Shown in pieces: positions 1 to 58,267 of a stretch of 64,000 nt of DNA; the stretch's first letter is position 1; the number at the start of each line of letters is the position of its first letter. The position numbers were made by a program, and so were the translations under genes. The notes beneath the pieces were generated by a model that saw nothing but the letters and a program-made list of their open reading frames with translations, was not told where the DNA came from and did not search any database. The DNA is from Styela clava (lineage: Eukaryota), in the NCBI RefSeq assembly GCF_964204865.1, contig NC_135262.1:12524001-12588000 (forward strand). The letters run 5' to 3'.

Positions 1-92
1 TATTGAGTGCTGGGACATCGACGTAGCCTACGTCTAGTTTGGATCCTAAATCAATCTGTAACTGCACATTATGCAAGTCAATGATAGCTCAC

Positions 93-8962: not shown

Positions 8963-11900
8963 TTAATTATCTTTTTTTGTCACCCATGTCTTCAGTTCTA
9001 GGCGATTTATTTTTCCGAATTTTGATTTCGGTATTTTGTTAACAAATTGGATTCCTCCTCTTAACTGTTTGTAATCGACAAGTTCATCTGGAATTAAGAA
9101 AGAAAGTAATATTCATAGATTAAAATTCCAAGTAAAGTAAATTTCAATATGTTTGTACTTTTAATTAGCGTTTGAAGTTCATCCGCTGTAAGTGATTCAA
9201 CTTTTCGAACAACAAACGCTTTCGGTAACTCTCCACAAGTAAGATCGGGGACACCAACCACCCCAGCATCTTCAACATCTGGGTGACTCAACAGCACATT
9301 CTCTATTTCAGCAGGAGCTACCTATATACGACAAAGTGAAATAAAAGTCATATTATGAAAACGGGGAAGACATGATAGGATTTTAATGGAAATTCAATAC
9401 ATTCGTAATAGAATGACAGCAAAATCATCAAAAAGTTATTGTAATATCCCTATGTTTTATTTTTGTGTTTCCACGTAAACAATTTTATTGATAGATTTGA
9501 ACAACATGGTTCTGCTATTTTGAAATGAATTTCAAAGCAACTCTGTCTGACTGATGTGCAACAAAAATGGGTGTTGGATGCTAGTGATCCTGGTCAAGTT
9601 ATCGATTTATGAATAGTAAACTATATAATCATATGGCTCACTTGTAGAGTTTTGTACTTGATAACTTCCTTCAGTCGACCAATCACATAAAGCTTTTTAT
9701 TCTTAATAACCCCGATATCGCCTGTACGAAGAAATCCATCCCTATTAATTGTTTGCTCCGTTGCTTCAGTATTTTTAAAATAACCAACGGTCACCTATTG
9801 AAAAAAGATACTCTATCATAATTTCAAAATCTAGTTATTTTTTTTTGTCAATTCATAACTTTTAAAAATATTTCAATTTTTTTGGTTTGAACCAAGATAA
9901 TAATGTTCAACTGGCTTGATTGTTTGAATGGTCGGTCTATTACTTGAAGGGGATTAAATTGTTTTTGTTCTTAATGAGTTTTTTTTTATAACTTAGTAGG
10001 TCGCATTGGAGGAAATATTATAACAAAGTCATAGTACAGTATTGTAGTGAAACGATGTATTTAACGACGGAGTTTATGTGCATTTTTAACGGATATTGTG
10101 TACTAATAAAAAAAGAAATATACTTGTGGCCCTTTTATCCAAATTTCTCCTTCCTGGTCAGATTTTAATTCTTTACCTGTATTCGGATCAACTATCTGAA
10201 AAACAAGAGTCAAGTATTGTTACAAATCAATTTTTTGTTAAAATCTGCCGTTTAATTGTCCCATTCATTATCCCCACGGCCCTATATAAGTTGGAATAAC
10301 TGTTATTAAAGCTATTTACTACAAAATGTCTTACTATTTCAGCATACAATCTTTGTTAATCCCACCAAAACATACTTACCATCAATTCTGAGTTAACACA
10401 GATGGAGCCAGCTGAATCAACGACTGAGTCGTCGTTATCCTTCCAAGATATAGGACAGCATTCCGTCATTGCGTAAACTAAACATGTTAGGTTATAAAGT
10501 AATTCACTCAATTTTGATTTGAGTGGTCGTAAAATGAAGCAAGTGCTTATGGTATAACCCATACTTGTAAATCGTTGATCCACGCACAGAAAGCAAATAA
10601 AGTCTGAGGCAAGTGTTTTTCCAAGGAAAGTTATACTTTGACTGAGTTTGTCATTTGAACGAATATCGAAATATTCGTTTCTTTACGTTAGGGTATTGAT
10701 ATTGTATTTGGTTCTGACGTCTGTATGCTTGAACAGTATGATCAACCAATACAGTGTGACAACTGACCTGGGAACAATTTAACATTGAAACGATCGATGA
10801 CTGATTTCATTACTGTTGTTGAAATAGATGCACCTCCCGTGAGCGCAGTTTTCCACGATGTTGTATCATATTTGTGATGCAATTCTGTCTGCGATAGTTG
10901 CAGCAAATTTGGTGGCACCACGAACATGTGATTTACCTAAGACATATAATTTGTCTATTTTTAGGCTGCATAATCAAAATAAATGATGAATAATTCAGGT
11001 AGATTTGGATGAATGAAAATTGAACAATATAGCTAGACCAGTAGGGACGCAAGGAAAAAACTACAAGAAAAACAAAAAATTCTTTTCGCAAAGATAGAGA
11101 CTTCAGTACTACGTTCAGTAGCAAAACAGCATTATCATTCATTTTATTATAACTGGTTTACTTATATTAAAATATGGAACAACACAATTGGTCGTTGATA
11201 GAATATTGGAGCATTCTATGTTGTACATAGGTATAGTAAGGGTAAGTTTTCAAATAAATCTACTTAGACTTTTACTTTAATGATAGCCTTGACTTGGAAA
11301 ACGACTTTTTGAGTAGACTTAACTTTGGTTATGCGTATTCTAGACCAGTGGTTCCCAAACTTTTTTGTACCATCGCCCCCCTAATTTGTGCAACTTCATC
11401 GGAACAGCGCGCGAAGACTGCGACAATTCGTGAACTCAACTCAGTCGTTTTATTAAAAGAAAAAAGGTTTCCGACTCCTGGGCTACGTGAACTACCTAAT
11501 TCTGACGCGACTATGCAATACATTAGATTTTTGCAAACTTCCAATAGAAATATTCAAATTTTCTGAATATAGATATCACGCAATATAGCAATCTTTTAAC
11601 AAGGTTTCAAAAATTTGGCATACCTTGTACTTTTGTATGGCTGATAATGTTTCTCCAACGTTAAACTCCTGATCCATAACTACACTTAGCCCTCCTTGCA
11701 AAACAGCCAACACTAACATGAAACCACCCCCGTGAAACATCGGTCTTTCGTTGTAATAAGTTTCTCCACGCTTGTATTGTGAATGATGCCTTGAAATTAA
11801 GACAAGTATTGCGTCTATTGTAACAATAGAAATCAAAAACTTTAGATTCATTTAGCAAGAACGAGCTGGAGCACTCTGACTGACCAGCATAGTATTACCT

Positions 11901-14900
11901 CTCGAATAGACATGTTGTAATATGTATGAACACGATACACAGAAGTCGAAGAAGAGGGCTATACACAGAAGTAAAAACAGTCGCGATAACATAGGTTTGA
12001 GTAGTATACTCGACTCGGTCATTATTGTAAATTTGTTAATTGGAAATTATTCTAATTTCCTATCTAGTTCAATTTAGCCAAGTAATTTTCTTTGTTTAAT
12101 AGCATTGCATTTTTTTGAAATATTAAGTTCAATTTCATTTTAAAAATGTTTTTCTTACCACAAACACAATATAATAGAAATCGTGCTATAATGAGTGTGC
12201 ATGACACATTTTGGCATTCCCGTTGTTCCGCTTGAATACGGTAATATGGCCAAAGTTTTTCTGGGTGATATTTTGCAATGAGGCACAAAGTTATCTAAAA
12301 AATAATGACACTCATGGGAAAATTTGCAAGCAATATATTTTTGCTAATAGACATGTATTTTTACCAATATCTTTCTTCAAGAGAATGACTTCATCCCAAG
12401 TTTTGAATTCACTACTTTTTCCAAGAACTATGATTTTCTAAAATACAATAATATAATTGTACATAATGCAAGATCGTGTCAGATGACATAACTAGATAAA
12501 TGTGTCACAAATCTTATAAAAATGAATCATATTTCTCGGGCAATTATCAAAAGTTATCTAAATTGTTATTGTTTAAAAAAACTGATTACTTTAACTTGAT
12601 TCTCTGAGTATTGTTTGAGAGCTTGCTTCACGTTATTGATGCTTTCGTCTGATACGATTAGCATTTTTGGCTCAGTGATTTTGAAGATGTGCTGCATTTC
12701 CCCCTACAAATAAATAAAGCAAGGAATGCGTGATAAGTTTAAAAGAGTTTGGCATGTTATTTAGATAAAATAGTAGTGTATATATGGATAGTTTGTATGT
12801 AGTTGAAAAGTCGAATGGGGCGATAGGGGGGCGATTTCGCAAAATCTGTTTTCGTTCGGCGCATCGTGCACTTGATTACTGTACTCTGCGTGCTTTCGTA
12901 GGTTTGAATCACGTAGGCAATTATCACACGCGAAAGGATTGTGTATCCAAGTGGTCGGCAAAGTACGGCCGGAGTAAAATAATCTGGCCAGGACGCTTCA
13001 CTGAATGGACCTTTCCCCGACATTTGACTCCGGAAAATTCTTCCTATATTTTACCACTAAATTTTCGGTGCTTATTTTAAGAGCGGTTTCGCGAGTTGTT
13101 GCTTGTAAAATGGGGTATTTGTTTCAAACTATTATTCTAATTCATACCATTCAACAATCTGATTTTTAAAAGTACCGGTAAAGAATTTTAGCCTAGTCTA
13201 CCACAGCTATTTCTACACTGATTTTTTGATTACTGTAATTAAACTAAAACTTCTAGAAAGACAAAGTCATCATTGACTTATATTTAAAATTCCGAAAAAC
13301 AACTAAAAACTAACGAATATAATTCAAAAACGCGAAAATGAGGTAATGTTCACGACCACACCTGAAAATCTGTTTGAGTGAGAAATGTGTCTGGCGGAAG
13401 CGAAAGGGACATTGTTACGTTTATTTTTACATCTTGCTGATTGGCCAATGTTACGAAGTGAACAAGGAAGTCTATGCCCGGGAAAACATCCAAACGGCGG
13501 TTTTGATGATGGATTAATTTTATTTATAATCTACGCTCGAGGAGTAAATTACATTTTTTTACGTAACAAAATGTATCGTGAGACACGTCTAGACTAAATT
13601 TTGTTATATCCTAAGGGTTCTATTGAACAGCAGTTACTCGTTTAACCAGCCTACAATTTAATTATAGTTAGACAAATGGAAACACGGAGAAAATTTGATG
13701 ATGAGCGCGGGTGTTCAATAGCGCAATAAATATTCTAATATATTGCAATGCAATAAGGAAATAAAATTCATATTCTATTCGAGAGATTCATCCCTGCTTA
13801 AATTTTGGAGGGAATGTATCTTCTTAACGAAAATCTTAATCAAAATTTCACAATGCGAAAATATTCACTTCGATGTTTGGAAGTACATATTTGTGCGAAC
13901 AAATATTTTTGAAAATGAACATTACAAAGAACAAGCAAAGAACTAGGATTAGTAATGCCCTTTTAGAAAATGTTCCAAAATGTTGGCGTTGTAAAGCTAT
14001 CAAGCGTGATGCAGCAAAAAGACAATGTCACATTTATTGTCATTGTAATTTTTTTTTTAATAAGACGACTGAGTTGAGTTCATTGTCTCAGTTTTTGCGC
14101 GCTGTTCCGTTTTAAACTTTCAAAAAATATATATGACCCGCAAAAGACTAGCAACCTTTAATTTTGTCCCGCGAGCGACGAAAAATTTGCCGACCCCTGG
14201 GCCGTAGCCGATAGTCGGTCACGGCTTCTTCCATATCCAAGTGCACGAATCCAAAACAAATGGTGATCGGACTGGAGGCCGTGGTAGGATGAGGAATCAG
14301 GGATGAATTTTACCGAAGACCGTTATATATCATGTACTTTGGTGCAGGTCATCAGGCTGTTGGGATGAATGAGATGTACGAAAATAATTATTATAAGTTT
14401 TGGAAATTTAACTTTGCTTTCATTATTTTAATGTGAAATGGGGTGAATTTAGGGAGTCAAATGCTAAAGGGAAGAGTACACCGCTATTAATGAATTTAAT
14501 AGTACTGTTAGATGTCCCATGCAGCGAATATTTATTTGGCTATTTTTCGTATGACTGGGATATTTTATAGAATATTAGCAATTGCTTCATTTTAGCTGAA
14601 AAGTTGATCAAACTTATTTGCTTGAGAAGAGAAATTCTACCAACTTTATTTCAGAAGTTGATCAAAGGCATATCTAGAGAATTATGATTTTGCTAAATAA
14701 CATCACTGAAGCTTGAATAGATAGATTTTACCTCCTTTGTATAATGGATTGCAAGGTGATATAGCTGCCCCACAAGATATCACTCCCATCATTGCTATTA
14801 TATATTCCACACAATTCGGAAGAACCAGGCCAACAACATCGCCTTCGCCTATATTTTGCTCCTGAAAATATTTTCCACAGGATTGTATTTGTTCGTAAAC

Positions 14901-15862
14901 TTGTTTGAATGTGAGTTGTTTTTCCTCGGTGACGCTATCAATCTGAATTTAAGCAAAGATTTTGAGAAACGAAAGATTCAGTCCGCGATACTATTGAACT
15001 TATAACAATGACACTTTTGTAAAACTCCACAAATTAATTTTTGAGTTGCTTATTTATCGACAATTATAACAAATGTTATTATAAATAAATAATATGATAC
15101 CAGAATATTAAGCAAAAATGGGTTGCAACTTGGAGATGAAGTGCTAGCCCCCAGTAGATGAGGGCATTAATATGGCATCATTAATAACACGTTATTGCTG
15201 ACATGCCCACGCCACGAACGCAAAAGCTTTGACACTTTAGAGGAGGGTGTGCGATATTTTGTCGACGGGCCATATAACCAGGTTCGGACAAATAGCTGGG
15301 CTACACAAAATATTTAGTTTTACCATGTACACAATGAATTAAAAAATTCTCACAATGCAAAATCTTATTTATTTAACATTTTGGTGGGACACTTGATATT
15401 TCGACTTCCTGCATAGTTTGTTAACATCAGCTTTGACGAAAGTTGTAGCAATTCTTCACTGACTAATCAAATGTTCTACATCTGCTTTTGAAAAAGGCAA
15501 ATGAAGAGAGTATGGCTATCGCTTAGCCGGGCAAAACGGTGAAATATTTAACGCAACGACAAGACCAAAAAACAATATTTATTTTTACCCATGTGAGCAC
15601 TTTTTAATGCTTGATTGGGAAAATCTGAGTGTTGAAAAAAGCCACTCCAAATAGCTTTTCGAGCCGGGTTGCAAAAACTTGCCTTCATCATAGTATACAA
15701 GTAAAAAAAAATATGAAAAGTATACAAACGTATAGCCTACAAGAATAAAACTCTACTTACCAAAGCAACTTCGCTACCATACTCCTTGATACGCGACAGA
15801 AAAAAATCGCTCAAAGATAATTCCGGTATATCAAAAGCCACATGTTTTGATTTTGTGGGCAT
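8963..15862 (-). CDS. Luciferase/4-coumarate-CoA-ligase-like ANL adenylating enzyme, copy 1; 12 exons, one +1 frameshift at the start of exon 3
   Basis: Exons 15862-15761, 14942-14732, 12703-12590, 12437-12365, 12294-12159, 11789-11624, 10936-10768, 10477-10380, 10195-10124, 9794-9642, 9321-9159, 9087-8963. Motifs [11 protein letters not shown] (A3), PMFHGGG (A4), VYAMTE (A5), [17 protein letters not shown] (A7), GRLKEVIKY (A8), VAPAEIE, PKSKFGKI (A10). Exon 3 is 114 nt against 113 nt in the paralogs. Confidence 0.88.
11346..11480. mobile_element. Short chimeric hAT (Buster/Charlie-like) MITE remnant in an intron
   Basis: It has CAGTGGTTCCCAAAC and ...CCGACTCCTG ends. Positions 11400-11460 are the reverse complement of ~14050-14108. 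No matching TSD. Confidence 0.6.
13860..14199 (+). mobile_element. hAT (Buster/GTF2IRD2/SPIN-like) transposon 3' fragment
   Basis: Encodes MFGSTYLCEQIFLKMNITKNKQRTRISNALLE, the hAT C-terminal dimerisation motif FGSTYxCEQxFS. Ends in the TIR TTTGCCGACCCCTG. Confidence 0.8.
14201..14310 (+). mobile_element. Degenerate fragment of the SINE family found at 19259-19549
   Basis: CCGATAGTCGGTCACGGCTTCTTCC...CCAAAACAAAT...GCCGTGGT aligns by eye with the SINE body. Confidence 0.55.
15241..15470 (-). mobile_element. hAT (SPIN/Buster-like) remnant
   Basis: The minus strand encodes RIATTFVKADVNKLCRKSKYQVSH, resembling the Buster-type transposase C-terminus QxSH. A TIR-like end lies near 15241. Confidence 0.5.
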
Positions 15863-23061: not shown

Positions 23062-26000
23062 ATGCCTTTGAGATCGAAGCATGGAAATTTTGATATTCCA
23101 GAAATATCGTTGAGCGACTTTTTTCTCGAGCGTATAAAAGAATATGGTGACGATATTGCTCTGGTAAGTACCATAATTGTATTTGCTTGTATATTTCTAA
23201 ACTTGTGCCGCATGCGGATTGTATATATATTATAATTTTTATATAATGTTGATCAAACCCCACAATTATGCAGAATTGAGGTGTCATCTCTACACCCTGA
23301 ACAATGAAATTGATTTATTACCCAAATACATAGTATATCTAATATATATATATGTAAATTTCACAATAGGTCAGTTGAGGCACAAAAGTCGCTTACTTTC
23401 TACATGATTCTGATCAATCGATTCTCGGAATCTGCACAAAAAAATCATCTGTTCTGAGACAGTTGTAACTTCATTTTTAGTTGCTTCACAAAAAAAAAAT
23501 TAACGTAGCAATGAAAGGCAAAAACCGCTTGTTTTGTGTAATTGTTTAGACACATTTTTTTAATATTTCCTTTTTAATTCAGATTGACAACACCAACGAA
23601 GAAAAACAGCTTACTTTTAGACAAGTTTACGAACAAATACAATCCTGTGGGAGATTTTTTCAAAAGCAAATGATAGGCAAGGGAGATGTTGTGTGTCTGA
23701 TCACTCAGAATTGTGTAGAATATATAGTGGCAACGGTTGGTGTGGTATCTTGTGGGGCGACCATATCACTTTGTAATCCGTCGTACAAAGAAGGTAACTC
23801 TTTTTCGTTGAATATTTATTAGCTTCAACATTATGATAGATATGACTGATGAGGGATTGTTTCAGTCAACTATTTGTTCTCATTGACTTGTGGGGTATTG
23901 TATGCTACGAGTGCTACTCCTGAATGAGGAGGCTTCGTTGGTCTGTATGCCCGGAAAACAAATTGGAACAATTACTTCACCAATGGTTAATTCTTTTGCT
24001 TGAATTGTATTACTTCAATGGTCAGGTTGAGAATTTGATTATGAGAATGCTATTCGCACAGTTCGCTCTGAACAAGGCTATGCGGAAACATTCACTGATA
24101 TTGAATAATAAGTAAGGAAATACAATTCTATTAGAAGGACCGGAATATTTCGGGTTCGGGATTGCCGCCTGATTTATTATAACTCGGGTGAGGTGGTGGA
24201 ATGAAGCTATATGACCGAAAAATATTCAAATTCGAAGTTGGGAGCCGAATTGAAGATATCTGTCAATCGTATACAGTGTAGACGTTCTGATGGACAGAAG
24301 GATGTTACCTGCGCGAGACCATGAAGCGCAATAAAGTTCCGTTTGTGTGCTTTGGATTTAGACCGATATTTGAACAAACGAACACAATGGTTTTGTTCAA
24401 AGTAGAATCATTTCATTGATATGAGTTCTTTCACGAGTTAATTTTGAACAATTTTTTTTGTTTTGCAGGAGAAATACAGCATATCTTCAAAATCACCGAA
24501 CCAAAAATAGTTATCGCATCTGAAAAAAGCATCGATACTATAAAGCAAGTACTCAATAATAACCCAGAGAATCAAGTTCAGGTATCCTGATTTTTAAATT
24601 ATAGATATTATTAATAATAAAATACAAGATCTTTTATATTGTCCATGTATTTATTCTATTTTAAATGTGTTAAGAGGCAAATTCATTGACTTAGAATATC
24701 GATCGCGGTTGTTTGAGCGTACTGTGTAAACACAATTTTCACTTTTAGAAAATCATAGTCATTGGAAAAAGTAATGAATTCGAAACTTGGGATGACATTA
24801 TAATCTCAAATAAAAATAACAGAGGTAAGAAATTATTTCTAATTGTAAAAAATATTGATTTCAAATTTTTCTTGATTCAATAATTTTTCTAGAAAACATT
24901 GTTCCGACTTGCAAAATATCACCAAAGAAAGATTTAGCGTTCCTACCATATTCAAGTGGAACTACAGGAATGCCGAAATGTGTTATGCACACTCATTATG
25001 GTACGATTGCGATGATATTAGCCAGTTGGTAAGAAGAACTTTTCTGATATCGTATCGTTATTCTGCTTAAACCAAAGCACGGAAAATCACTTTATAACAA
25101 TTAAATTCATTACGTTTGGAAATTTCAATACAATATTTATTAATATACATAAACTATCTCATACAATATATTTGAAATGTGTACTTGTAAGTCATTTTTC
25201 AATAAACCTTCGCACAAAATGTTGATGCCAAAGTATTGCTTAGTCGCTTCATTTCGCAAAACTAGATATAAGTATGGATAATTGCATCTTTAACTCAGAC
25301 AAGTTTTAGTATTTTGTATATAAAAATTTATATGAATAGAAAACGTATTCCTAACTTATGAGCATATAAGATATTTTTAGTTGAGTGATATGTCATTTAC
25401 TTCATTTTTGGTGTTACAAAAACTATTTCAAAACTTGATATGGATTATGGCAGCGTGGTATGTATCTTTCGCGACGCACGATTGTAAGTCGATGTGATAT
25501 GTCTAAACATTTTGAATTCTTTTGAGGCACCATTTAAACTATCAACGCGGAGATGTGTTCTACAACGAACGGCCTTTGTATCACGGAGGTGGTTATTTTT
25601 TCTTACTTGTTGCACTGCAAGGCGGGTTATGTGTTATCATGGATCAAAAGTTTGACGTTGAAGGTACACTGGCTGCGATACAAAAATACAAGGTAAAAAT
25701 ATCTTTTACCATATACCATTCGTTTGCTATATTATTTACTCTGGTGATAGTAATATGATATTGTAGCGATTTCAAAATCAGACTTCAATGTGCCAGTACA
25801 TGACCACATATTTGAACGTCGGAAAACATTTGAAAAATTTGGTTTTCATTTGATGGGTATTTGATGCGGATGTATACGTGCATGTTTTCCAACTAAGATC
25901 TTTTTACAGTATATTTGGTTTTCATTGAACGCTTCGTCGGACACCAAGGCTTCCAAGGTTACATTATGTTGGAGGAAGAATAATTCTCGCTGCAATTTAT

Positions 26001-28504
26001 TCATATTTTTCTTTATATTCATTCATGTCGTCAAGGCAAATCATATGCTTCTGGTGCCACCAAATTTGCTAAAACTGTCCCAGACAGAGTTACATCACAA
26101 GTATGATACCTCGTCGTGGAAATCGTCATTTATTGGAGGTGCATCAATTCCACCCACAGCATTGAAAGAAGTTATCGATAGGTTCAACATTAGAATATTT
26201 CCATGTTAGTTGACAAATTTTTATAAACTTTTATAGTAAAGGTGAAAAACAAAGTCTAACTTTATCCAATCAGGTCGGCAGGCAACGTTTCAAGCCTAAA
26301 ATGGAATGAATTGAGTATTTGGAATAACTCGATAAACGACCGTTTATTACCTTTGGCAGCTTGTGTAATTTGTAGGTTCAACATTAGAATATTTTCATGT
26401 TAGTTGACAAATTTTTATAAACTTTTATAGTAAAGGTGAAAAACAAAGTCTAACTTTATCCAATCAGGTCGGCAGGCAACGTTTCAAGCCTAAAATGGAA
26501 TGAATTGAGTATTTGGAATAACTCGATAAACGACCGTTTATTACCTTTGGCAGCTTGTGTAATTTGTTTTATAAAATCGTTTACTATTATTTTGGAAATA
26601 GATATTATTTTAAACATGAACCCGAGCTTAAAGTACAAGTTTGTCTTGGACATAATAGCTGGCTGTTACTGGCGACATTCATTCTTAATTTGAAACTACC
26701 TGTCCAATATCACGCTCGTTCTTCTTGTATTTCATCTTGTATGTACATATATCAATTCCAATTCATATATCACCAATTCCGATGCATTCCTAACTTTGCA
26801 AGTAGATATGTACCTAAATCATTTAATTTTTAACGTGTTGGTATTTCAGGTTATGGGCAGACTGAATGCTTTCCTGTATCTTGGAATGACAAAGTAGATC
26901 AATTCATTGATTCAGCTGGTTCAATTGCAGTCAATTCTGAAATTATGGTGAATTAATTTAACGATTTTTGTAATACAAAAATAGAGTTATATAAAATTTA
27001 CGTTATATAAAGTAAGACAAAAACTTGAAGATTTTGTTTATTCATTTTAAAATCCTTTGGGCTCTATGTGATTCGTTTTTCAATTCGAAATTGTGCTACC
27101 TTCCTATTACGCTTTGAAGTATTTTGACGGTACTGGTATTGTACAAGGTAAAGTAGACTACTGGTCTTCGTTTTCATATATTTGAGCATCGCTGTCTTGT
27201 TTTGTATGCGATGACGTCATCAACATTAAAAATTTCACACTGCGTTCGCGTTCGTTGCTATCTGGGGGTCAGGGGAAGTCGTTAAGACTACGGTACCGGT
27301 AATCTAAGCAGATTGCTTACCCGTACTAGTTCATTTTGCTCTTCGTGTCCATATATTTAAACAGAGCTCTTTTGTTTGACTCTTAAATGTTTTACAGATT
27401 GTTGATCCAAATACGGAAAAAGAGTTGAAATCTGGCGAAGACGGCGAAATTTGGGTCAAAAGTACACATGTAAGGCATGAGATTCTTTCGTCAATATTTT
27501 ACCACATTTTCTGTAGAATAAATTAGTAGAAGATATATTCACACATTTTAATCTAAATGTATATAGGTAGCGATTCCAATTCAACTGTTAACAACATTTG
27601 ATCGTAACGATCATCCTTAGAATCAACAAAGACATTGAGAATCAAAGCAATCATTCCAAACTATCTTATATACGTTTTGCTAGATGGCTGCTGGATATTA
27701 TAAAAATTCGGAAGCAACAGAACAAGCAATAAATAAAGACGGATTTCTTCGTACTGGCGATATTGGACATATTGAAAATGAAATGCTTTTTGTGGTTGGC
27801 CGGCTCAAGGAAGTTATCAAATATAACACGTTCCAGGTAAAAAAAACAAACTTTCAATCACATATTTACCCGCCAATGTACGTTTTGATTTTCAAAAAAA
27901 AAAATTCGGTTTTCTTCAGAATAGTTTTTTTTTTTTAAATACGTTATTTATCTAAGTTAGTTCTTATGTTGAATTTTATGACTTCTCGATATATATCAAG
28001 ATATATTTATGATCGTGTTTAAATTGTTTCGCCTTGTTTTATACTATGACATGTTTAATCATTAATATATTGTTAACCCACTGTTACTTAGAAGATTCGA
28101 CACTTTGAATTTCTAACTATTTCATTTTTTTCTTCATGTTCAGGTTCCACCTGCAGAAATAGAGCATGTACTTATGAAACATCCTGGTTTAAAAGATGCT
28201 GCAGCGGTTGGTGTGCCAGATGAAGCATGTGGGGAGTTACCAAAAGCATTCGTTGTACGGAAAATGGAATCGGTCACAACAGATGAACTGCATGAATTGA
28301 TTAAAAGTACCAACTACATATAAATTTTACTTTATTCCACATGTTCTGTAATAAAAGTACAATTTTATTTTTCTAGATGAACTTGTCGATTACAAACATC
28401 TTCGTGGCGGGATCCAATTTGTCAATCATATTCCGAAATCTATACTTGGCAAAATAGATCGCATAGAATTGAAGAAATGGGCGATGAAAAACGAGAACCT
28501 ATAG
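23062..28504 (+). CDS. Luciferase/4CL-like ANL adenylating enzyme, copy 2 (intact, 528 aa)
   Basis: Exons 23062-23163, 23583-23793, 24469-24581, 24749-24824, 24893-25028, 25527-25692, 26036-26204, 26850-26947, 27398-27469, 27684-27836, 28144-28306 and 28377-28504 total 1587 nt, open. Motifs [62 protein letters not shown]. Ends AMKNENL. Confidence 0.95.
26179..26566 (+). repeat. 194-bp tandem duplication spanning the exon 7 donor (copy A only)
   Basis: Units at 26179-26372 and 26373-26566 differ by 1 mismatch. Copy B has a single unit (~51118-51275). Confidence 0.93.
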
Positions 28505-31091
28505 CAATGTCCCTCAAGAGATAATTTGAACCCCCAAATGCAAAAATGAAATTTTCTGTAATATTGCCGTAATTTATAATATTAGGATGATTTTGATTTA
28601 CTACTGAGTATTTTGAAAAAAAGTTTCGAACAAGTAATTAAAATTGTTCATATTATTAATAAACTAGGTTGCATGCATTTTGTTCACTTTTCTTAAGCAA
28701 CTCATATTTTTGTTTGTATGTTTGAGAAAATAACTGAAGGTGATGAATTTCAAAATCATGGTCAGAAATATTGATTTCAATGCAAACTCGTATATATACT
28801 GTTGAATGCGTGTTCAAATGTACTGCGACGCGATCGACCGCGGAACAGATGAAGAAACTATTCAAAATTAGTCGCCGAATGAGAATCTACCAAGATATTA
28901 GTATTATAGTCTGTAGTCATATTAGTCTGGTTCTGGGTCACTGGATGAATACGACTTACATTAAAGGATTTCATGGACAAAAAACAATAATCAAACTAGA
29001 CGTTAAAATCGATGTTCAATCAACATTTCAATATAAATTGTAAATAAAATTATATATGAACAGGTACTGGAAAATGAAAACGTAAATATCAAGCTTGCAA
29101 GAGTATGGTATTCCTAAAATGTAAGTATTACAAGGGAACTGTCGACCTAATTGGCGATTTGGGAACCAATCGTTTCTCAAACACAGTCCGCGAATAAGTT
29201 GATTGTCTTTATTCTCTGCTAGCGTAACCGCTTGGTTATCGATAGCTATGGTGTTACCGAAAACTCGAAGTTGCGAAGCGCAATGAGACGTTTTATTCTA
29301 TGTCTTCGAATTGGGTGTTGGACATTGTTTGTTCTTGTTCGACCGCATACATGAAGTCTCTAAAATAATCTACGCGTTTAATCTAGTCCAAACTCGCACA
29401 AAAATGGTAATTTTATAACTAACGATACAGTAAACGTATTATCGGAACTGCATGACAAAGAAAATATTTCAAGAAACAAAAAACAATAGTATGAAGCTTG
29501 TATATTCACCATTTTTGATTAACACAGTACTAACATAAGTATCTGAGTACTAAATAAAACATATAACATCCTCGTGAAGTACATGTTCACAAATATAATT
29601 TAGACATACCGGTATATACTTCGAGAAAAAATATTTGCTTTGAAATTACTATAACTTGAACTCGACCGAATTGCTTATCGTGGATTTGTTTGTTCATGCT
29701 TGACGTTAAATAGTTGGTTGACTGGAAAATAGAAGACATCCATCTCTTTTTTTATATATTTACCAAAATGGTTTAGTTCGTAAAATTGGCCTATATACCT
29801 GAAATATTTATTAACCACAATCATAAATTCTGAGCGGGAATTACCTGCAGTGTAAGCAAAGAATCGGTTATGAGAAAACTTTAGGACTGAATCATCAGCC
29901 TCACTATCATATCAACCTTATGTTATTTCTATAATTATCCCTTATAATCCCGTTGCTTTCATACTATTCAACATTGAAGTTCGAAGACATTATCAAATCG
30001 TATTATCTACTAGCAGTATAATGGCTTTCCCGTGTAAAAGCAGTCGTGCTTTAAAGACGCACGCAATTACATGTGATTACACGATATGAAGTAATTTATA
30101 GCTTTCTTTTTAGGCATCATTTTTAATTTTTTCCCGATGATTTTTTGAGACAATGTTACGGTAAATAGCTATAGCGTGGACACCGCAGCGTTGGTAGTCA
30201 GACTTTCGAACTTCATAACATCTTAAATAGTGTCGTGATATTGCATTGAATATACACTATACACTTAATTTCAAATGGATACTTGAATTATAGCAAATAA
30301 GAATAAGGATTCTTCTTTTTGTATTAAATATATTTCTTTCTAATTAATCATAAAAAGTTGAATACAGATTGCGAACGACACGGTTAACGATGTTGAATTA
30401 GGTTCGTAGAAGATATAGCAAATCATCAGAGTAAAATATGCTTGAATACCCAAAAATATTTTAGTGCTCATAAAGTTGAACCATGTATAATTGTTGATAT
30501 TCAATTAATTATAAAAAATCTATCACGGAACCACGCAGAAATATTCACGAAATGAATCTAATTATTCGTAGCGCTATGAGGTCAAATATGGAAACATGAC
30601 CAATCGGAGTAGTTCAACAGCTACCTATAACCATACGATTTACACGTACGCGTTTTTGCTTCTTCCATCACGGACGTCACGGACTTGAGAAATTGGTTTT
30701 TAGTCCTTGACATATCATCCAGATTTCTTGAATCAATATAAAATTGAATTGGCCCCATCTCTGAAGAACCATCGCGGTGATCATTCAAAAATTCAGAATC
30801 AAGCAATAGTAATATAGATTTTGATTCAACTCAAATTGTTTAAAGTCATTGAAAGCATGGTGCGAATAACAGTGCATTTAAAGTTTGAACACGAAAGCTG
30901 AGGATTATTCTAATGACAGTTTACGAGTTCACACGTCTGTCTCTCACATGCTTTTTGCGGCTTGAGTGATTTATATCAATGTTCCTTTACATTCCTATCA
31001 CATCATATTCATGTCCGGTATCCGATATGTGCACGTACCCAATGACTAGAATTCGAAGTGATATAAATTCACCGAAACAACTTATTTACAG

Positions 31092-32374
31092 TTTATGCAA
31101 TGACCGAATGTTGTCCCATATCATGGACGGATAAAGCTGATACATTCACGGATTCAGTTGGCTCTGTTCTGCGTCAATTCGGAAATTATGGTAATGTTTT
31201 AATATGAGTGTGAATTATCATCAGTGAAGAAGATGTAGATAATAACCAGCACACAGACAAAATGACAAAAACTATTTTTCACTATCGAAATAATGTTTGA
31301 TAATGTTTTACAGATTGTTGATCCAAATACAGAGGAAAAAATGAAACCTGGTCAAGACGGAGAGATTTGGGTCAAGGGACCACAAGTAGGCGAACTTTTT
31401 GTACGATGTACACAAGTCCATGTGTTTTGAAATACTATTAATGGCAATTTGCTCTCTTTATTTCTTTTTGAAAGAAAATAATTAAATTGAAAAAATCAAT
31501 TACAATACATTTAATCAAAGAGATAATCGTCAGTCATGCAATCAAGGAGTCGATCATTTCGAAGTTGCAACTAAATTGAGAAAATGTGACAAAGTCTATA
31601 TTTCAAAAGTAATTCCTAGTTGTGCCATTTACTAGATGAACGTTGGATATTATAAAAATGCCGAAGCAACGATGAAGTCAATCAATAAGGATGGATTTCT
31701 TTGTACAGGCGATATCGGAGTTGTTAAGAATGAAAGGCTATATATATGTTATTGGCCGATTGAAGGAAGTTATCAAGTATAACACATTCCATGTATCTGT
31801 TCTATATGGAAATGGGTCATCTAGACTAGACACATAAGTTAATTGAATCCATCAATCAGACAGTTTACTGGGCGTTCATATACGATAAGAAACATGTTTC
31901 ATCAATAACTGACTAGCAAAAGAAGATTCTTACGACATTGTAAAAATATGAGGCCGATTTTTTTTTACCCACAGGTTAAATTGATTCGTGTAGCGATTAA
32001 TTCGTATACTGTCTGTTTAGGTACCACCTGTCGAAATAGAAAATGTACTTTTGCGTCACCCTGGTGTTAAAGATGTTGGAGTGGTTGGTGTTCCAACCCC
32101 GTTTGTGGAGTGTTACCAACGTTTGTTGTAAAAAAAATCTTGAATCGGTCACAGCGAACGAACTTCAAACTCTGATAAAAGGTGAAAAAAAGTATATTAG
32201 TTTTACTTTAATCTACGTGTTCAATTAATATTATTCAAAGTATTTAGTTCAATTTCAGATGAGATTGTCGATTATAAACAGTTGAGAGCAAGTATCCAAT
32301 TTGTCAATATGATACCAAAATCAAAACTCGGAAAAATTGATCGCATAGAATTGAAATAATGGGCTATGAAATAG
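31092..32374 (+). pseudogene. 5'-truncated ANL ligase pseudogene (exons 8-12 only)
   Basis: Recognisable YAMTECCPISW, IVDPNTEEKMKPGQDGEIWVKGPQ, DGFLCTGDIG, PPVEIE and IPKSKLGKIDR. Frameshifts in exons 8, 10 and 11 and a premature TAA in exon 12. No exons 1-7 were found upstream. Confidence 0.92.
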
Positions 32375-45367: not shown

Positions 45368-45405
45368 GTTGAATCAGAGCCATTATATAATGGCTCTGGT
45401 TGAAT
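45368..45405. other. Probable transposon excision footprint: 24-bp perfect palindrome between 7-bp direct repeats
   Basis: GTTGAAT-CAGAGCCATTATATAATGGCTCTG-GTTGAAT. Confidence 0.7.
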
Positions 45406-48210: not shown

Positions 48211-51200
48211 ATGCCTTTGAGATCGAAGCATGGAAATTTTGATATTCCAGAAATATCGTTGAGCGACTTTTTTCTCGAGCGTATAAAAGAATATGGTGAC
48301 GATATTTCTCTGGTAAGTATCATAATTGTATTTGCTTGTATATTTCTAAACTTGTGCCGCATGCGGATTGTATATATATTATAATTTTTATATAATGTTG
48401 ATCAAACCCCACAATTATGCAGAATTGAGGTGTCATCTCTACACCCTGAACAATGAAATTGATTTATTACCCGAATACATAGTATATATATATATATATG
48501 TAAATTTCACAATAGGTCAGTTGAGGCAATAAAGTCGCTTACTTTCTACATGATTCTGATCAATCGATTCTCAGAATCTGCACAAAAAAAATCAACTGTT
48601 CTGAGACAGTTGTAACTTCATTTAAGTTGCTTCACAAAAAATTTAACGTAGCAATAAAAGGCAAAAACCGCTTGTTGTGTGTAATTGCTTAGACACATTT
48701 TTTTAATATTTCCTTTTTAATTCAGATTGACAACATCAACGAAGAAAACCAGCTTACTTTTAGACAAGTTTACGAACAAATACAATCCTGTGGGAACTTT
48801 TTTCAAAAGCAAAAGATTGGCATGGGAGATGTTGTGTGTCTGATCACTCAGAATTGTGTAGAATATATAGTGGCAACGGTTGGTGTGGTATCTTGTGGGG
48901 CGGCGATATCACTTTGTAATCCGTCATACAAAGAAGGTAACTCTGCTTCTTGAATTGTATTATTTAATGGTCAGGTTGAGAATTTGATTATAAGAATGCT
49001 ATTCGCGCAGTTCGCTCTAAACAAGGCTATGCGGAAGCGTCCACTGATATCAAATAATAAGTAAGGAAATACAATTCTATCAGAAGGACCGGAATATTTC
49101 GGGTTCGGGATTGCTGCCTGATTTATTATAACTCGGGTAAGGTGGTGGAATAAAGCTATATGACCGAAAAAACGAAAAATATCCAAATTCGAAGTTGGAA
49201 GCCGAATTGAAGATATCTGTCAATCGTATACAGTGTAGACGTTCTGATGGACAAAAGGATGTTACCTGCGCGAGACCATGAAGCGCAATAAAGTTCCGTT
49301 TGTGTGCTTTGGATTTAGACCGATATTTGAACAAACGAACACAATGGTTTTGTTCAAAGTAGAATCATTTCATTGATATGAGTTCTTTCACGAGTTAATT
49401 TTGAACAATTTTTTTTTGTTTTGCAGGAGAAATACAGCATATCTTCAAAATCACCGAACCAAAAATAGTTATCGCATCTGAAAAAAGCATCGATACTATA
49501 AAGCAAGTACTCAATAATAACCCAGAGAATCAAGTTCAGGTATTCAGGATTTTTAAATTATAGATATTAATAAAAAAAAAATACAAGATAATTTTTATTG
49601 TCCATGTATTTATTTTATTTTATGTGTGTTAAGAGGCAAATTCATTGACTTAGAATATCGATCGAGGTTGTTTAAGCGTACTGTGTAAACTCGTATTTTC
49701 TTTTTAGAAAATCATAGTCATTGGAAAAAGTAATGAATTCGAAACTTGGGATGACATTATAATCTCAAATAAAGATAACAAAGGTAAGAAATTAATTCTA
49801 ATTGTAAAAAATATTGATTTCAATTTTTCATGATTGTCAATAACGTTTTAAGGAAACATTGTTCCGACTTGCAAAATATCACCAAAGAAAGATTTAGCGT
49901 TCCTACCATATTCAAGTGGAACTACAGGAATGCCGAAATGTGTTATGCACACTCATTATGGTACGATTGCGATGATATCAGCCATTTGGTAAGAAGAACT
50001 TTTCTGATATCGTATCGTTATTCTGCTTAAACCAAAGCACGGAAAATCACTTTATAACAATTAAATTCATTCCGTTTGGAAATTTCAATACAATATTTAT
50101 TAATATACATAAACTATCTCATACTCGCTATATTTGAAATGTGTCGTTGTAAGCCATTTTCCAATAAACCTTCGCAAAGAATATTGATGCCAAAGTATTG
50201 CTTAGTCGCTTCATTTCGCAAAACTAGATATAAGTATATGGATAATTGCACCCTTAACTCAGACGAGTTGTAGTATTTTGTATATAAAAATTTATATGAA
50301 TAGAAAACGTATTCCTAACTTATGAGCATATAAGAATATTTTAGTTGAGTGATATGTCATTTACTGCATTTTTGGTGTTACAAAAACTATTTCAAAACTT
50401 GATATGAATTATGACGACGCACGACTGTAAGTCGATGTGATATGTCTCAACATTTTGAATTCTTTTGAGGCACCATTTAAACTATCAACGCGGAGATGTG
50501 TTTTACAACGAACGACCTTTGTATCATGGAGGTGGTTATTTTCACTTACTTGTTGCACTGCAAGGCGGGTTAAGTGTTATCATTGATCAAAAGTTTGACG
50601 TTGACGGTACACTGGCTGCGATACAAAAATACAAGGTATTGGAAAAATATCTTTTACCATATACCATTCGTTTGCTATATTATTTACTCTGGTGATAGTA
50701 ATATGATATTGTAGCGATTTCAAAATCAGACTCAAATGTGCCAGTTCATGACAACATATTTGAACGTCGAAAAGCATTTGGTTTTCATTTGATGGGTATT
50801 TGATGCGGATGTATACGTGCATGTTTTCCAACTAAGATCTTTTTACAGTATATTTGGTTTTCATTGAACGCTTCGTCGGACACCAAGGCTTCCAAGGTTA
50901 CATTATGTTGGAGGAAGAATATTTCTCGCTGCAATTTAATCATATTTTTCTCTATATTCATTCATGTCGTCAAGGCAAATCATATGCTTCTGGTGCCACC
51001 AAATTTGCTAAAACTATCCCAGACAGAGTTGCATCACAAGTATGATACCTCGTCGTGGAAATCATCATTTATTGGAGGTGCATCAATTCCACCCACAGCA
51101 TTGAAAGAAGTTATCGATAGGTTCAACATTAGAGTATTTCCATGTTAGTTGACAAATTTTTATAAACTTTTATAGTAAAGGTGGAAAACAAAGTCTAACT

Positions 51201-54200
51201 TGAAAGGAAATGAATTGAGTATCTGGAATAACTCGATAAACAATCGTTTATTACTTTTGGCAGCTTGTGTAATTTGTTTTATAAAATCGTTTACTAATAT
51301 TTTGGAAATAGATATTATTTTAAACATGAACCCGAGCTTAACGTACAAGTTTGTTTTAGACATAATAGCTGGCTGTTACTGGCGACATTCATTCTTAATT
51401 TGAAACTACCTGTGCAATATCATGTTCGTTCTTCTTGTATTTCATCTTGTATGTACATATATCAATTCCAATTCATATATCACCAATTTCGATGCATACT
51501 TATTTTTGCAAGTAGATATGTACCTAACTCATTTAATTTTTAACGTGTTGGTATTTCAGGTTATGGGCAAACTGAATGCTTTCCTGTATCTTGGAATGAC
51601 AAAGTAGATGAATTCATTGATTCAGCTGGTTCAATTGCAGTCAATTCTGAAATTATGGTGAATTAATTTAACGATTTTTGTAATACGAAAATAGAGTTAT
51701 ATAAAATTTACGTTATATAAAGTAAGACAAAAACTTGAAGATTTTGTTTATTCATTTTAAAATCCTTTGGGCTCTATGTGATTCGTTTTTCAATTCGAAA
51801 TTGTGCTACCTTCCTATTACGCTTTGAAGTATTTTGACGGTACTGGTATTGTACAAGGTAAAGTAGACTACTGGTCTTCGTTTTCATATATTTGAGCATC
51901 GCTGTCTTGTTTTGTATGCGATGACGTCATCAACATTAAAAATTTCACACTGCGTTCGCGTTCGTTGCTATCTGGGGGTCAGGGGAAGTCGTTAAGACTA
52001 CGGTACCGGTAATCTAAGCAGATTGCTTACCCGTACTAGTTCATTTTGCTCTTCGTGTCCATATATTTAAACAGAGCTCTTTTGTTTGACTCTTAAATGT
52101 TTTACAGATTGTTGATCCAAATACGGAAAAAGAGTTGAAATCTGGCGAAGACGGCGAAATTTGGGTCAAAAGTACACATGTAAGGCATGAGATTATTTCG
52201 TCATTATTTTACCACTTTTTCTGTAGAATAAATTAGTAGAAGATATATTCACACATTTTAATCTAAATGTATATAGGTAGCGATTCCAATTCAACTGTTA
52301 ACAACATTTGATCGTAACGATCATCATTAGAATTAACAAAGACATTGAGAATCAAAGAAATCATTCCAAACTATCTCATATACGTTTTTCTAGATGTCTG
52401 CTGGATATTATAAAAATTCGAAAGCAACAGAACAAGCAATAAATAAAGACGGATTTCTTCGCACTGGCGATATTGGACATATTGAAAATGAAATGCTTTT
52501 TGTGGTAGGCCGGCTCAAGGAAGTTATCAAATATAACACGTTCCAGGTAAAAAAAAACTTTCCAATCACATATTTACCCGCCAATGTACGTTTTGATTTT
52601 CAAAAAAAAAAAATTCGGTTTTCTTCAGAATAGTTTTTTTTTTAAAAAATACGTTATTTAAGTTAGTCCTTATGTTGAATTTTATGACTTCTCGATATAT
52701 ATCAAGATATATTTATGATCGTGTGTAAATTGTTTCGCCTTGTTTTATACTATGACATGTTTAATCATTAATATATTGTTAACCCACTGTTACTTAGAAC
52801 ATAGGTTCTCAAAGTGCTCCGTACGGAGCCCCAGGGCTCCGCGAGAGGAACCCAAGGGCTCCGCGAGCTATTCGATTACTTTTTAAAATACTGGCTAATT
52901 TTGTAACTGTTCAAAGAAGCAAGAACAGCTTTGATAAAATTTGACAATAATATAGCCTTGAAATATGGTAAAGATGCGGAATTAAAAATGACGTTATTTA
53001 TGAGCTGGAGCGCAGTCAGGTTTCTTGAAAGGGTTCAAAATTGAAATCGGAAATTTCCGCGCAACATCATTTAGCAATTGGAAAAAAACGGATAACGAGA
53101 TTTCTGTTGCGTAAAATATTCATTGCATGACGATGCGAGTATTTAAAGTGTCTTGTCGTAATAATTTATTTCTGCTCAACTTTACTCACGTTTCATTCGA
53201 AATTACTATTAGGATTGCTAAAAGGAAAGAATACTTTTCTAAAATAACATAAAATACGTGATAAACTGCCAACTATGAATAAATTGGAGTTGTATTTTTG
53301 CGATTTGTCAAACTTGATTTGTTTTTTCGCACTCGAGATTATTTTTAAGCAAGATAAGATCGCTGTTTGAAAAATCACAAGATCTGGGCAAAATACGAAT
53401 GATTGAAATTTATTTTATTGCATGCGGCTCCGTTGGTAGTTTCAGAGTGAAAAAAGTTACACCATGCGTACAATTGACTGTGTTTCAATTTCGCAGTTAC
53501 TACGATGAATAACCAATAAAAAACTAACAAAACATCAAATTTTGTGATTTACAATGCCTATAAAAGCATTTTTAATCTGACATGAGTCTGCTGAAACTAA
53601 ACTTATAGTGTGATTTTCCATTTCAAGTTTTAATATTTTAGAATACCGTTTTTCAATCAAGAAATTTGAGCTGCGGATTTACCTCTTTAATAATTATTAT
53701 CTTTAGCATTTCGTCGCAGATGACTATAATACGGTAACATGTTTTTCACATTGAACTCATAATTCCCCACGAGAACAAATAAGCAATTATCGTCGTCATT
53801 GTAGAACAATACATGTATATATATGCCGAAGGAAATTTTTGATTTAGGGAGAATAAACACCGACGTAAAGATGTTTAAAAACACGCCATGCTGACGAAAA
53901 CAATCGGCGATTGTAACAAAATGCAATCGCGCACATTATTAGTGGCCTTTCAAGTCCTCCGAAAATGTCAAAAAGTAAAAGATTCGACCCCCCAATTTAT
54001 TAATATGTTTGTCAAGTGTCAAATTTACAGCTTTAGTATATTTAATTTATTTTTGAAATTGACATTTATATATGACTTGTATTACCCTATTAAAAAGGTT
54101 TAGCATTTAAGTTAGGTAAAGTACGTTTAACTTACTCAGGAATATTAATCGGAAAGTAACAATTTTAACATTTATTTTGGGGCTCCGTGAATGATAGTCA

Positions 54201-54654
54201 ACTCTTCAAGGGCTCCGCAACACCAAAAGTTTGAGAACCCCTGACTTAGAAGATTCGACACTTTCAATTTCTCACTATTTTATTAATTTTTTTCCCCATG
54301 TTCAGGTTCCACCTGCAGAAATAGAGCATGTACTTATGAAACATCCTGGTGTAAAAGATGCTGCAGCGGTTGGTGTGCCAGATGAAGCATGTGGGGAGTT
54401 ACCAAAAGCATTCGTTGTACGAAAAATGGAATCGGTCACAACGGATGAACTGCATGAATTGATTAAAAGTACCGACTACATATAAATTTTACTGTATTCC
54501 ACATGTTCTGTAATAAAAGTACAATTTTATTTTTATAGATGAACTTGTCGATTACAAACATCTTCGTGGCGGGATCCAATTTGTCAATCATATTCCGAAA
54601 TCTATACTTGGCAAAATAGATCGCATCGAATTGAAGAAATGGGCGATGAAATAA
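48211..54654 (+). CDS. Luciferase/4CL-like ANL adenylating enzyme, copy 3 (intact, 524 aa)
   Basis: Exons 48211-48312, 48726-48936, 49427-49539, 49708-49783, 49853-49988, 50470-50635, 50975-51143, 51560-51657, 52108-52179, 52394-52546, 54306-54468, 54539-54654. Same motifs as copy 2. Ends WAMK. Confidence 0.95.
52800..54243. mobile_element. Non-autonomous hAT (Buster-like) in intron 10, copy B only
   Basis: CATAGGTTCTCAAA / TTTGAGAACCCCTG TIRs, GGGCTCCG subterminal repeats, and TSD ACTTAGAA (52792-52799, 54244-54251). Empty site at 28086-28093. Confidence 0.93.
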
Positions 54655-56220: not shown

Positions 56221-58267
56221 TGAATGCAATGACCCAATACTGATTCATTCACCGATTCAGTTGGCTCTGTTTGCGTCAATTAAGAAATTATGGTTATAAA
56301 ATTAGGATTTTATTATCAGTGTGAAGTTAAATAATAATAAGGACATGCTCTGGAGGAAGCTGTAACTAGTAACCAGAAAACAGACAAAATGAGTAACAGT
56401 TTTTCATAATCGAAATATTGGTTGGTATTTGGATGCTGTTTTACAGATTGTTGATCCGAATACAAAGGAAAAAATGAAACCTGGTCAAGACGGAGAAATA
56501 GGGGTCATGGGACCACAAGTAGACAATCTCTTTGTGCAATGTACACAATATGAACTGACATAAATGAATATTAAAATTCTATGTGTTATGTTATACTTTT
56601 AATGGCAATTTACTATTTATTTATTTTTGAAAAAAGAAATTGAATTAATTAAAAGAATCTCAGTACATTTTTCAAAGCGACATTCATACAATAAAGGAAT
56701 TATCAATTTGTAGTTGCAACTGAATAAGAAAATGTGACAAAGTCTATATTTCAAAAGTAATTCCTAGTTATGCCATTTACTAGATGACCGTTGGATATTA
56801 TAAAAATGCCGAAGCAACGATGAAAACAATCAAATAAGGATGGATTTCTTTGTACAGGCGATATCGGCGTTGTTAAGAATGAAAGGCTATATGTTACTGG
56901 CCGATTGAAGGAAGTTATCAAGTATAACACATTCCAGGCGAGCAGCATGTTTATCGTTTTTTCCTCCAGTACGTACTTAGACTCAAAGCGACAAAGCTGT
57001 TTAATGACAGAAATACTTGACTGACACATCTGGACATGGGGATTTTCTAGAACTTGATGATTTAAGAATTGAATAGAATATTTTTTATCAAATTAAATTG
57101 AATCTTCTCGAATACTGTTCAAGACGTGTAATTGTATCTGTTTCATATGGAAATGGGTCTACTAGACTAGACACACAAGTTAATTGAATCCATCAATCAG
57201 ACAGTTTACTGAGCGTTCATCTACGATAAGAAACATGTTTCATCAATGACTGACTAGCAAAAAAGAGAAAATTCTTACGACATTGTAAAAATATGGTTGA
57301 GGCTGAATTTTTTTACCCGCTGGTTAAATTGATACGTGTAGCAAATATTGCGTATATTGTCTGTTTAGCTACCACCTGTCGAAATAGAAAATGTACTATT
57401 GCGTGTTAAAGATGTTGGAGTGGTTGGTGTTCCGATTCCGTTTGTGGAGAGTTACCAACGCCTGTTGTAAAAAAAAATCTTGAATCGGTAACAGCGAACG
57501 AACTTCAGACTCTGATAAAAAGTGAGAAAAAGTATATTAGTTTTACTTCAATCTACGTCAGGGGTCGGGAACCCATGGCTCGCGAGCCATATATGGCTCT
57601 TTTGGTGACGGCATATGGCTCTCAGAAAAATCTAATATTCTAAGACTAAGCTTACTATTGTTACGAGATCCCAAACTCTTTTATAGCCGAATTTGGCAGG
57701 AAATTCCCAATACGTTTTAAAACACGCGTCCAGCACATGTCTATGTTATGTAAGATATGTACTAGAGAGGCATTGAGACAAACAAGGGGATTCTGGAACA
57801 TATATTGTGACATCACAAAGCGATATAGTTTAAAAACACTACGGAGATGTCTAAACGAAAAAGGGTGATGAGTATCGTAGATTTCTACATTGGGCTGCAG
57901 GTGAGCAACCGTTCAAGGCCCGCAGCGCCTACATGCAGCATCAGAAATCACATTAAATGTATATTGACATTGTATGTGTTGACTTTCGAGTAAACATTTC
58001 AGGTCTGATTAATTGAAGAAATGTTATATGGCTCGCACGGAAATGCAATTGAAAATATGTATATTTTATGGCTCTCTTGACCAAAAAGGTTCCCGACCCC
58101 TGATCTACGTGTTCAATTAATATTATTCAAAGTATTTAGTTCAATTTCAGAAGAGCTTGTCGATTATAAACAGTTGAGAAGAAGTATCCAATTTGTCAAT
58201 ATGATACCAAAAACAAAACTCGGGAAAAATTGATCGCATAGAATTGAAATAATGGGCTATGAAATAG
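56221..58267 (+). pseudogene. 5'-truncated ANL ligase pseudogene, copy B
   Basis: Exon 8-12 remnants ([46 protein letters not shown]) with deletions, frameshifts, and the same premature TAA as at 32357. Confidence 0.9.
57559..58102. mobile_element. hAT MITE (Buster-like), copy B only
   Basis: CAGGGGTCGGGAACC / GGTTCCCGACCCCTG TIRs and TSD ATCTACGT (57551-57558, 58103-58110). Empty site at 32211-32218. Confidence 0.94.

Follow-up and report, generated by a model that had tools for sequence, protein, structure and literature searches.

The 64,000-nucleotide stretch of the Styela clava genome analyzed here (NC_135262.1, 12.524-12.588 Mb; hereafter the window, without N runs and with 34% G+C) carries five loci of the ANL (AMP-binding) superfamily: three 12-exon genes (A on the minus strand, B and D on the plus strand), together with two pseudogenes present as 3' fragments (C and E). 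In all five, a threonine stands at the position of the glycine of motif A8. Comparison within the genome and with homologs indicates that these loci are part of a Styela-lineage-specific subfamily of 4-coumarate--CoA ligase (4CL)/luciferase-like enzymes that has no type 1 peroxisomal targeting signal (PTS1) and was amplified by tandem and segmental duplication; its location in the cell is probably cytosolic. We somewhat favor the reading that the enzymes would still be acyl-coenzyme A (CoA) ligases, changed in kinetics or specificity, and that their substrate would be some fatty, aromatic or xenobiotic acid. The threonine itself is most likely a tolerated or compensated change in a hairpin turn, and not a switch of acyl acceptor.

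The initial annotation of the window had proposed three full-length genes and two pseudogenes reading GRLKEVIKY(N/K)T(F/L), and a six-frame motif scan together with exon placement confirms this. The A8 motif is found at exactly five sites (9657-9680 on the minus strand; 27798-27821, 31754-31777, 52508-52531 and 56899-56922 on the plus strand), each of which continues as Y-(N/K)-T-(F/L), with threonine in five of five copies. The same scan locates the A3 motif SSGTTGMPK three times (12209, minus strand; 24952 and 49912, plus strand) and the A10 motif PKSxxGK four times, and the E fragment reads PKTKLGK. The annotation was likewise right about the rest of the proteins: the adenylation motifs of A, B and D are intact (A3 P-loop, A7 and the A10 lysine in PKSxxGK), A5 is altered, as seen in the junction peptides FP-CYGQTE (B and D) and FP-VYAMTE (A), and the C-termini are KKDN (A), NENL (B) and AMK (D).

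Exons were placed with the guidance of proteins from database searches and of tblastn pieces. In full-length comparisons the database proteins P0154 and P0159 stand in for the genes, a single exon having served as the search query from the window. The exon cores of gene D are near-identical to P0154, the 524-aa RefSeq protein "4-coumarate--CoA ligase 1-like isoform X1", and gene A matches RefSeq P0159 (530 aa) with approximately 88-98% identity per exon and scattered differences. In gene B every intron is GT-AG and there are no in-frame stops; it runs four codons beyond gene D (524 codons), as the position of the stop of D is a non-stop in B.

By sequence, the window proteins belong to the 4CL/luciferase-like branch of the ANL superfamily. 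Both stand-in proteins score above the curated Pfam cut-offs for AMP-binding (PF00501; P0154 258.3 bits, E 1.3e-76; P0159 259.9 bits) and AMP-binding_C (PF13193; P0154 66.8 bits, E 3.3e-18; P0159 67.0 bits). Residues 4-519 of the 524 of P0154 align with PDB chains of tobacco 4CL2 (E 2.6e-73 to 5.7e-73), Drosophila CG6178 (9.3e-71) and beetle luciferases (approximately 1e-61 to 1e-69). The only close relatives, at 65-100% identity, are S. clava RefSeq proteins, both in the single-exon search against 1.84 billion cluster representatives and in a word-index search with P0003. RefSeq names them "4-coumarate--CoA ligase 1-like" or "luciferin 4-monooxygenase-like". The suggestion that the family is undescribed therefore does not hold for the gene models, which RefSeq names; no published description of a Styela or tunicate 4CL-like family was found in literature searches. 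In its main text, the paper on the S. clava genome does not mention AMP-binding, acyl-CoA, luciferase or ligase, and its Table S8 of expanded families may list the family.

When the A7-A8 exon is aligned with PDB chains by phmmer, the threonine falls on the glycine of KYKGFQ/KYKGYQ, which is Gly444 in Nt4CL2 (5BSM) and, as had been proposed, Gly446 in firefly luciferase (1BA3). Of the Nt4CL2 hairpin residues Lys441, Gly444 and Gln446, the lysine and glutamine are kept and Gly444 is replaced by threonine in five of five window copies. When the enzyme adopts its second conformation, Lys441 and Gln446 presumably point toward the active site, roles that we carry over from Pt4CL1 K438/Q443 and luciferase K443. 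Nt4CL2 (5BSM/5BSR/5BSW) is the best PDB match and shares A3, A7, A10 and the A8 hairpin frame of Lys441, Tyr442 and Gln446. Its differences from the Styela proteins extend beyond Gly444: its Lys443 is asparagine in B and D, and its aspartate at the start of A8 is glycine. The latter was considered as a meaningful change and rejected, since glycine is frequent there in many ANL enzymes.

The acyl pocket also departs from that of Nt4CL2. Tyr239 of Nt4CL2 is reported to contact coumarate; in the Styela proteins this residue, by which the hydroxycinnamate pocket of true plant 4CL is recognized, is glycine (FHIY to HGGG), GAAPL is GGASI, and the specificity loop after A5 is shorter by five residues. 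Such a rebuilt pocket suggests that the acid substrate would not be a hydroxycinnamate, and the Styela genes stand in an animal, non-phenylpropanoid context. Overall, there are approximately 65 positions at which the clade departs from a residue conserved in at least 85% of 98 other relatives, including the glycine after the P-loop PK (PKG to PKC, cysteine in A, B and D), THxN (THxS/G) and QGYG (PCYG/PVYA) as well as the pocket motifs. As the threonine is one of these positions, it is not the sole diagnostic change.

Firefly luciferase and Drosophila CG6178 (7KYD), a long-chain acyl-CoA synthetase, belong to the same animal-type ANL clade, and their hairpin reads IKYKG(Y/F)Q. Both are peroxisomal and carry SKL-type tails. 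Luciferases and CG6178 keep Gly446, whereas the Styela proteins have threonine and are without PTS1.

The substitution is not confined to the window. The A7-A8 exon gave 44 matches in the genome, of which 36 were examined (30 loci from the search, 5 fetched, and window copy C); of the other eight rows, one is a further piece of C and seven are matches to different ANL genes, all weak (E 3e-5 or worse). With one copy (L033) too degenerate at the site, 35 could be read: 17 with threonine, 9 with glycine, 7 with serine and one each with asparagine and alanine. The threonine copies lie in a cluster on the window chromosome (12.53-12.92 Mb), a cluster on C1 (10.70-10.75 Mb) and at two single loci; serine copies are located on C9. 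Broken fragments account for 4 of the 17 threonine copies (C, E, L017 and L035), and the threonine codons are diverse (ACT six times, ACG five, ACA four and ACC twice). The hairpin lysine (IKY) and glutamine (FQ) are present in 35 of 35 readable copies. Since the five window copies are paralogs, their common threonine represents one inherited change and not five events.

A second tandem cluster of approximately 12 exon copies lies on C9 (3.89-4.00 Mb; L022-L032), with the degenerate L033. There, GGC (glycine), AGC (serine) and ACT (threonine) occur side by side, pointing to a path of single-base steps from glycine through serine to threonine.

The history of the site was assessed in trees of 32 and 46 proteins, obtained by quick IQ-TREE searches with support expressed as Shimodaira-Hasegawa-like approximate likelihood ratio test (SH-aLRT) values; the larger tree was built without mite proteins P0173 and P0018 and a eukprot row. 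Twelve S. clava proteins with threonine, alanine, serine or asparagine at the site form one clade (SH-aLRT 100), with a stem of approximately 0.45-0.5 changes per site, and this clade is sister to the glycine-bearing P0168. The topology indicates that the non-glycine clade has a single origin and is specific to the Styela lineage. P0168 already has several of the changes of the clade yet keeps the glycine, suggesting that the threonine arose late. All Styela members except P0170 fall, together with four transcriptome proteins, in a wider clade (support 100), in which at least three further losses of the glycine are seen (serine in P0166, threonine in P0169 and P0023). The absence of PTS1 extends to the whole set: an SKL-type C-terminal tripeptide is missing from all 17 Styela proteins (the window genes end in KDN, ENL and AMK), whereas Clavelina and Owenia homologs end in SKL.

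Variation at the A8 site is also observed in other relatives. Among the nearest 150 cluster representatives, 124 have an aligned residue at the site (100 glycine, 10 alanine, 5 asparagine, 4 threonine, 4 serine and 1 valine) and 26 have none. Twenty of 120 full-length matches are non-glycine, of which 14 are from S. clava; carriers outside Styela include a palm (alanine), a sand fly (asparagine), a nematode (serine) and an acorn worm (alanine). Of 222 non-Styela relatives whose hairpin aligns in register, 30 are non-glycine (alanine, serine, asparagine, rarely threonine), and some of these proteins carry PTS1-like tails (SKL, SRL, ARL). The residue preceding the site is asparagine or aspartate in 20 of these 30 non-glycine proteins vs. 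11 of the 192 with glycine (Fisher p 1e-13, a value that ignores shared ancestry). This coupling points to a compensated change of a two-residue hairpin turn.

The predicted proteins have both domains of the complete ANL architecture and, for the first step, the P-loop A3, A5, the A7 aspartate and the A10 lysine. In the mechanism that we envisage, these elements would use ATP to convert a carboxylic acid into its adenylate. The C-terminal domain would then rotate about the A8 hinge (GRLKE) and present the hairpin lysine and glutamine, and the change of the turn pair from Lys-Gly to Asn/Lys-Thr may narrow or reshape the pantetheine channel. What such a change means for CoA can be approached from acetyl-CoA synthetase (Acs) of Salmonella, in which we take Gly524 to be the equivalent A8 position. 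This glycine lines the CoA site; G524S and G524L block CoA addition, while G524A is tolerated and keeps CoA-ligase activity, as stated in a citing passage of a paper on engineering Salmonella Acs (PMC8511477). The premise that bulky substitutions of the A8 glycine impair the second half-reaction agrees with the G524S/L statement, and the glycine is near-invariant in the solved ANL structures compared. Acs is, however, of a distant ANL subfamily with another hairpin sequence. In plant 4CL, a preprint places Tyr442 and Lys443 among the CoA-pocket residues and counts the contact of Lys443 among the few hydrogen bonds to CoA; it gives the effects of K443A as minor and reports Y442H-K443N in some plant clusters.

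Retention of the hairpin lysine and glutamine in all readable copies argues for a retained second step, and the CoA ligation kept by G524A in Acs (PMC8511477) for retained CoA ligation, in addition to the non-glycine residues and the turn coupling in other relatives, some of them with PTS1-like tails. Several observations weigh against this interpretation. The G524S substitution is reported to block CoA addition in Acs (PMC8511477), and threonine is bulkier than serine. Many other near-invariant positions are changed (PKC, THxS/G, PCYG/PVYA), which could mean a different chemistry, and the loss of PTS1 takes the enzymes out of the usual compartment of their clade. Furthermore, no characterized CoA ligase with threonine, serine or asparagine at the A8 site was found in the material examined, and all five PDB alignments compared have glycine.

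Possible, though in our judgment rather unlikely, is that threonine (or serine, asparagine or alanine in sister copies) closes the pantetheine channel, and that the enzymes, like bacterial ANL amide bond synthetases, hand the acyl-adenylate to a nucleophile smaller than CoA (an amine or alcohol, for example) as part of a cytosolic small-molecule pathway in ascidians. A non-CoA acceptor of this kind was the proposal of the initial annotation. The block of CoA addition with adenylation spared in Acs G524S/L is in line with this (PMC8511477), and a precedent exists in McbA, an ANL amide bond synthetase that uses the rotated, thiolation-like conformation for amidation, by attack of an amine and not a thiol on the adenylate (PMC6282839). 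McbA (6H1B/6SQ8) shares the ANL fold and is among the PDB matches of P0154 (E 6.8e-38), but it is bacterial and distantly related, and is marked by absent basic contacts to the CoA phosphate and by an acidic entrance (PMC6282839). Of the 35 readable exon copies, 26 have lost the glycine, the 12-protein clade never regained it, PTS1 was lost as well, and many extra changes affect conserved active-site positions, all of which would fit a new acceptor. Conversely, nothing points to an acceptor, a partner gene or a product, the window neighbors including a fucosyltransferase and a CLCA-like gene; the A8 site also varies in relatives that keep PTS1 tails; and the coupled N/D-X substitutions of the turn suggest structural compensation. 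The more specific proposal, that a cytosolic clade of stolidobranch ascidians gave up CoA ligation via GGC to AGC (serine) to ACC (threonine) and acylates an amine or other small acceptor, appears unlikely. If true, the animal itself, and not its symbionts, would own a fast-diversifying set of enzymes that form amides or esters, for use in detoxification or in making small molecules.

Relaxed constraint after massive duplication might also account for the threonine and the motif changes, which would then be degenerative, with many copies weak or inactive and heading to pseudogenes; we consider this improbable. In its favor are the 4 of 17 threonine-type exon copies that sit in broken fragments, and the dN/dS (ratio of nonsynonymous to synonymous substitution rates; Nei-Gojobori, computed exon by exon) of 0.385 for the young pair B and D (519 codons, dS 0.047), which derives from only 37 changes. 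Over the longer term, comparing A with D and with B (457 codons each) gives ratios of 0.167 and 0.164, respectively, at a dS of approximately 1.1 that is near saturation. These low values, together with the persistence of the threonine through synonymous codon turnover and the intact adenylation motifs of A, B and D, argue against decay.

The state of gene A bears on the same question from both sides. Gene A is transcribed and spliced: all ten introns downstream of exon 2 are joined in RNA contigs of three runs (X1-X3, one study) with CT..AC borders (GT..AG on the minus strand), and such joints are absent from contigs of the DNA run X7, a run in agreement with the assembly. Among the contig rows listed, there is no difference at its threonine codon. 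This expression with correct splicing does not fit a gene in decay. The assembly allele, on the other hand, has a frame-breaking extra G at the splice acceptor of exon 3 (12700-12703, minus strand), where 12700-12705 reads AG followed by four G and an in-frame splice needs three (surplus G at 12703); no in-frame GT-AG splice between exons 2 and 3 was found in the assembly sequence. RNA contigs, which are from other individuals and contain single-nucleotide polymorphisms, join exons 2 and 3 in frame, and the DNA-run contigs agree with the assembly. The extra G could be a frame-breaking allele or a homopolymer error.

Finally, luciferase-like chemistry, in which the substrate is adenylated and then oxidized with O2 instead of ligated, is very improbable: the similarity to beetle luciferases and the RefSeq name "luciferin 4-monooxygenase-like" of one member would speak for it, but 4CL and the Drosophila acyl-CoA synthetase are matched at least as closely, luciferases keep the glycine, and Styela is not known to be luminous.

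The duplication history supports the description of an expanding family. A block of approximately 16 kb, carrying genes and pseudogenes alike, is present twice in the window (Table 1) as ten colinear pieces of 77-98% identity in a self-blastn comparison. More copies lie 123 and 225 kb away, with exon copies identical to the A7-A8 exon of gene D at C17:12699177 and C17:12801623, and further clusters are found on other chromosomes. Pseudogene C is frameshifted within its A7-A8 exon and interrupted by stops in the exon-11 region and in ELK*WAMK. In pseudogene E, the exon-8 piece contains a stop, the A7-A8 exon is likewise frameshifted, exon 11 is broken, and the ELK*WAMK stop of C recurs. This common stop indicates that both were already broken before the block carrying them was copied.

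Table 1. Coordinates of the adenylate-forming loci and the duplicated block in the window.
Feature	Coordinates	Strand	Description	A8 hairpin; Thr codon	Basis
Gene A	8963-15862	-	12-exon 4CL/luciferase-like ANL gene; 526 codons; C-terminus KKDN; stop 8963-8965	KYKTLQ; ACT 9648-9650	
Gene A exons	15862-15761, 14942-14732, 12702-12590, 12437-12365, 12294-12159, 11789-11624, 10936-10768, 10477-10380, 10195-10124, 9794-9642, 9321-9159, 9087-8966	-			
Gene B	23062-28504	+	12-exon ANL gene; C-terminus WAMKNENL; stop 28502-28504	KYNTFQ; ACG 27828-27830	
Gene B exons	23062-23163, 23583-23793, 24469-24581, 24749-24824, 24893-25028, 25527-25692, 26036-26204, 26850-26947, 27398-27469, 27684-27836, 28144-28306, 28377-28501	+			
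Pseudogene C	31079-32371	+	3' fragment, approximately residues 321-524	KYNTFH; ACA 31784-31786	tblastn pieces
Gene D	48211-54654	+	12-exon ANL gene; 524 codons; C-terminus WAMK; TAA 54652-54654	KYNTFQ; ACG 52538-52540	
Gene D exons	48211-48312, 48726-48936, 49427-49539, 49708-49783, 49853-49988, 50470-50635, 50975-51143, 51560-51657, 52108-52179, 52394-52546, 54306-54468, 54539-54651	+	all GT-AG		
Pseudogene E	56242-58264	+	3' fragment, approximately residues 341-524 (C and E together approximately 321-524)	KYNTFQ; ACA 56929-56931	
Duplicated block, copy 1	21263-37008		gene B, pseudogene C, start of downstream gene		self-blastn
Duplicated block, copy 2	46175-62681		gene D, pseudogene E, downstream gene		self-blastn

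Past the pseudogenes, the duplicated block extends into the downstream gene with 96-98% identity (33700-37008 and 59243-62681); at E 0.01, Pfam gives no match for an open frame of this gene (60091-60456). Within intron 7 of gene B, a 194-bp unit occurs as two repeats with 99% identity (26179-26567), an arrangement absent from the gene D copy, and the alignment of B and D breaks at this repeat (26262/26493). In introns of gene A (11160-11560 and 12760-14560) the summed contig depth of the DNA run rises from approximately 50 to 4,000-190,000, and loose ends and odd joints are numerous; these intron stretches are high-copy repeats (transposable elements).

Near the start of the window, a 192-aa open frame (5735-6310, minus strand) matches Pfam Glyco_transf_10 (fucosyltransferase C-terminal, E 5.8e-43), and two open pieces (81-726, minus strand) match Pfam CLCA (N-terminal domain of calcium-activated chloride channel regulators, E 7.3e-13 and 6.7e-07), in a gene that runs off the window start. 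Elsewhere in the genome, AMP-binding genes of other subfamilies (G000:C3:12162197-12169657, C2:20430352, C9:2493748 and C14:7247381) have uninterrupted frames of 678-708 aa and thus appear intronless, unlike the 12-exon genes of the window.

The A8 glycine is among the most constant residues of adenylate-forming enzymes, and an animal clade that is under selection without it, with gene A expressed, constitutes a natural experiment on its role. At least 13 intact-looking exon copies with threonine are present, plus others with serine, asparagine or alanine. Should CoA esters still be their product, the rule derived from the acetyl-CoA synthetase mutants would not extend to the 4CL/luciferase branch; otherwise, ascidians would own an unrecognized class of cytosolic acyl-transfer enzymes, with a bearing on how tunicate natural products originate. 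Under either reading, the public label "4-coumarate--CoA ligase" would be a misnomer for these genes.

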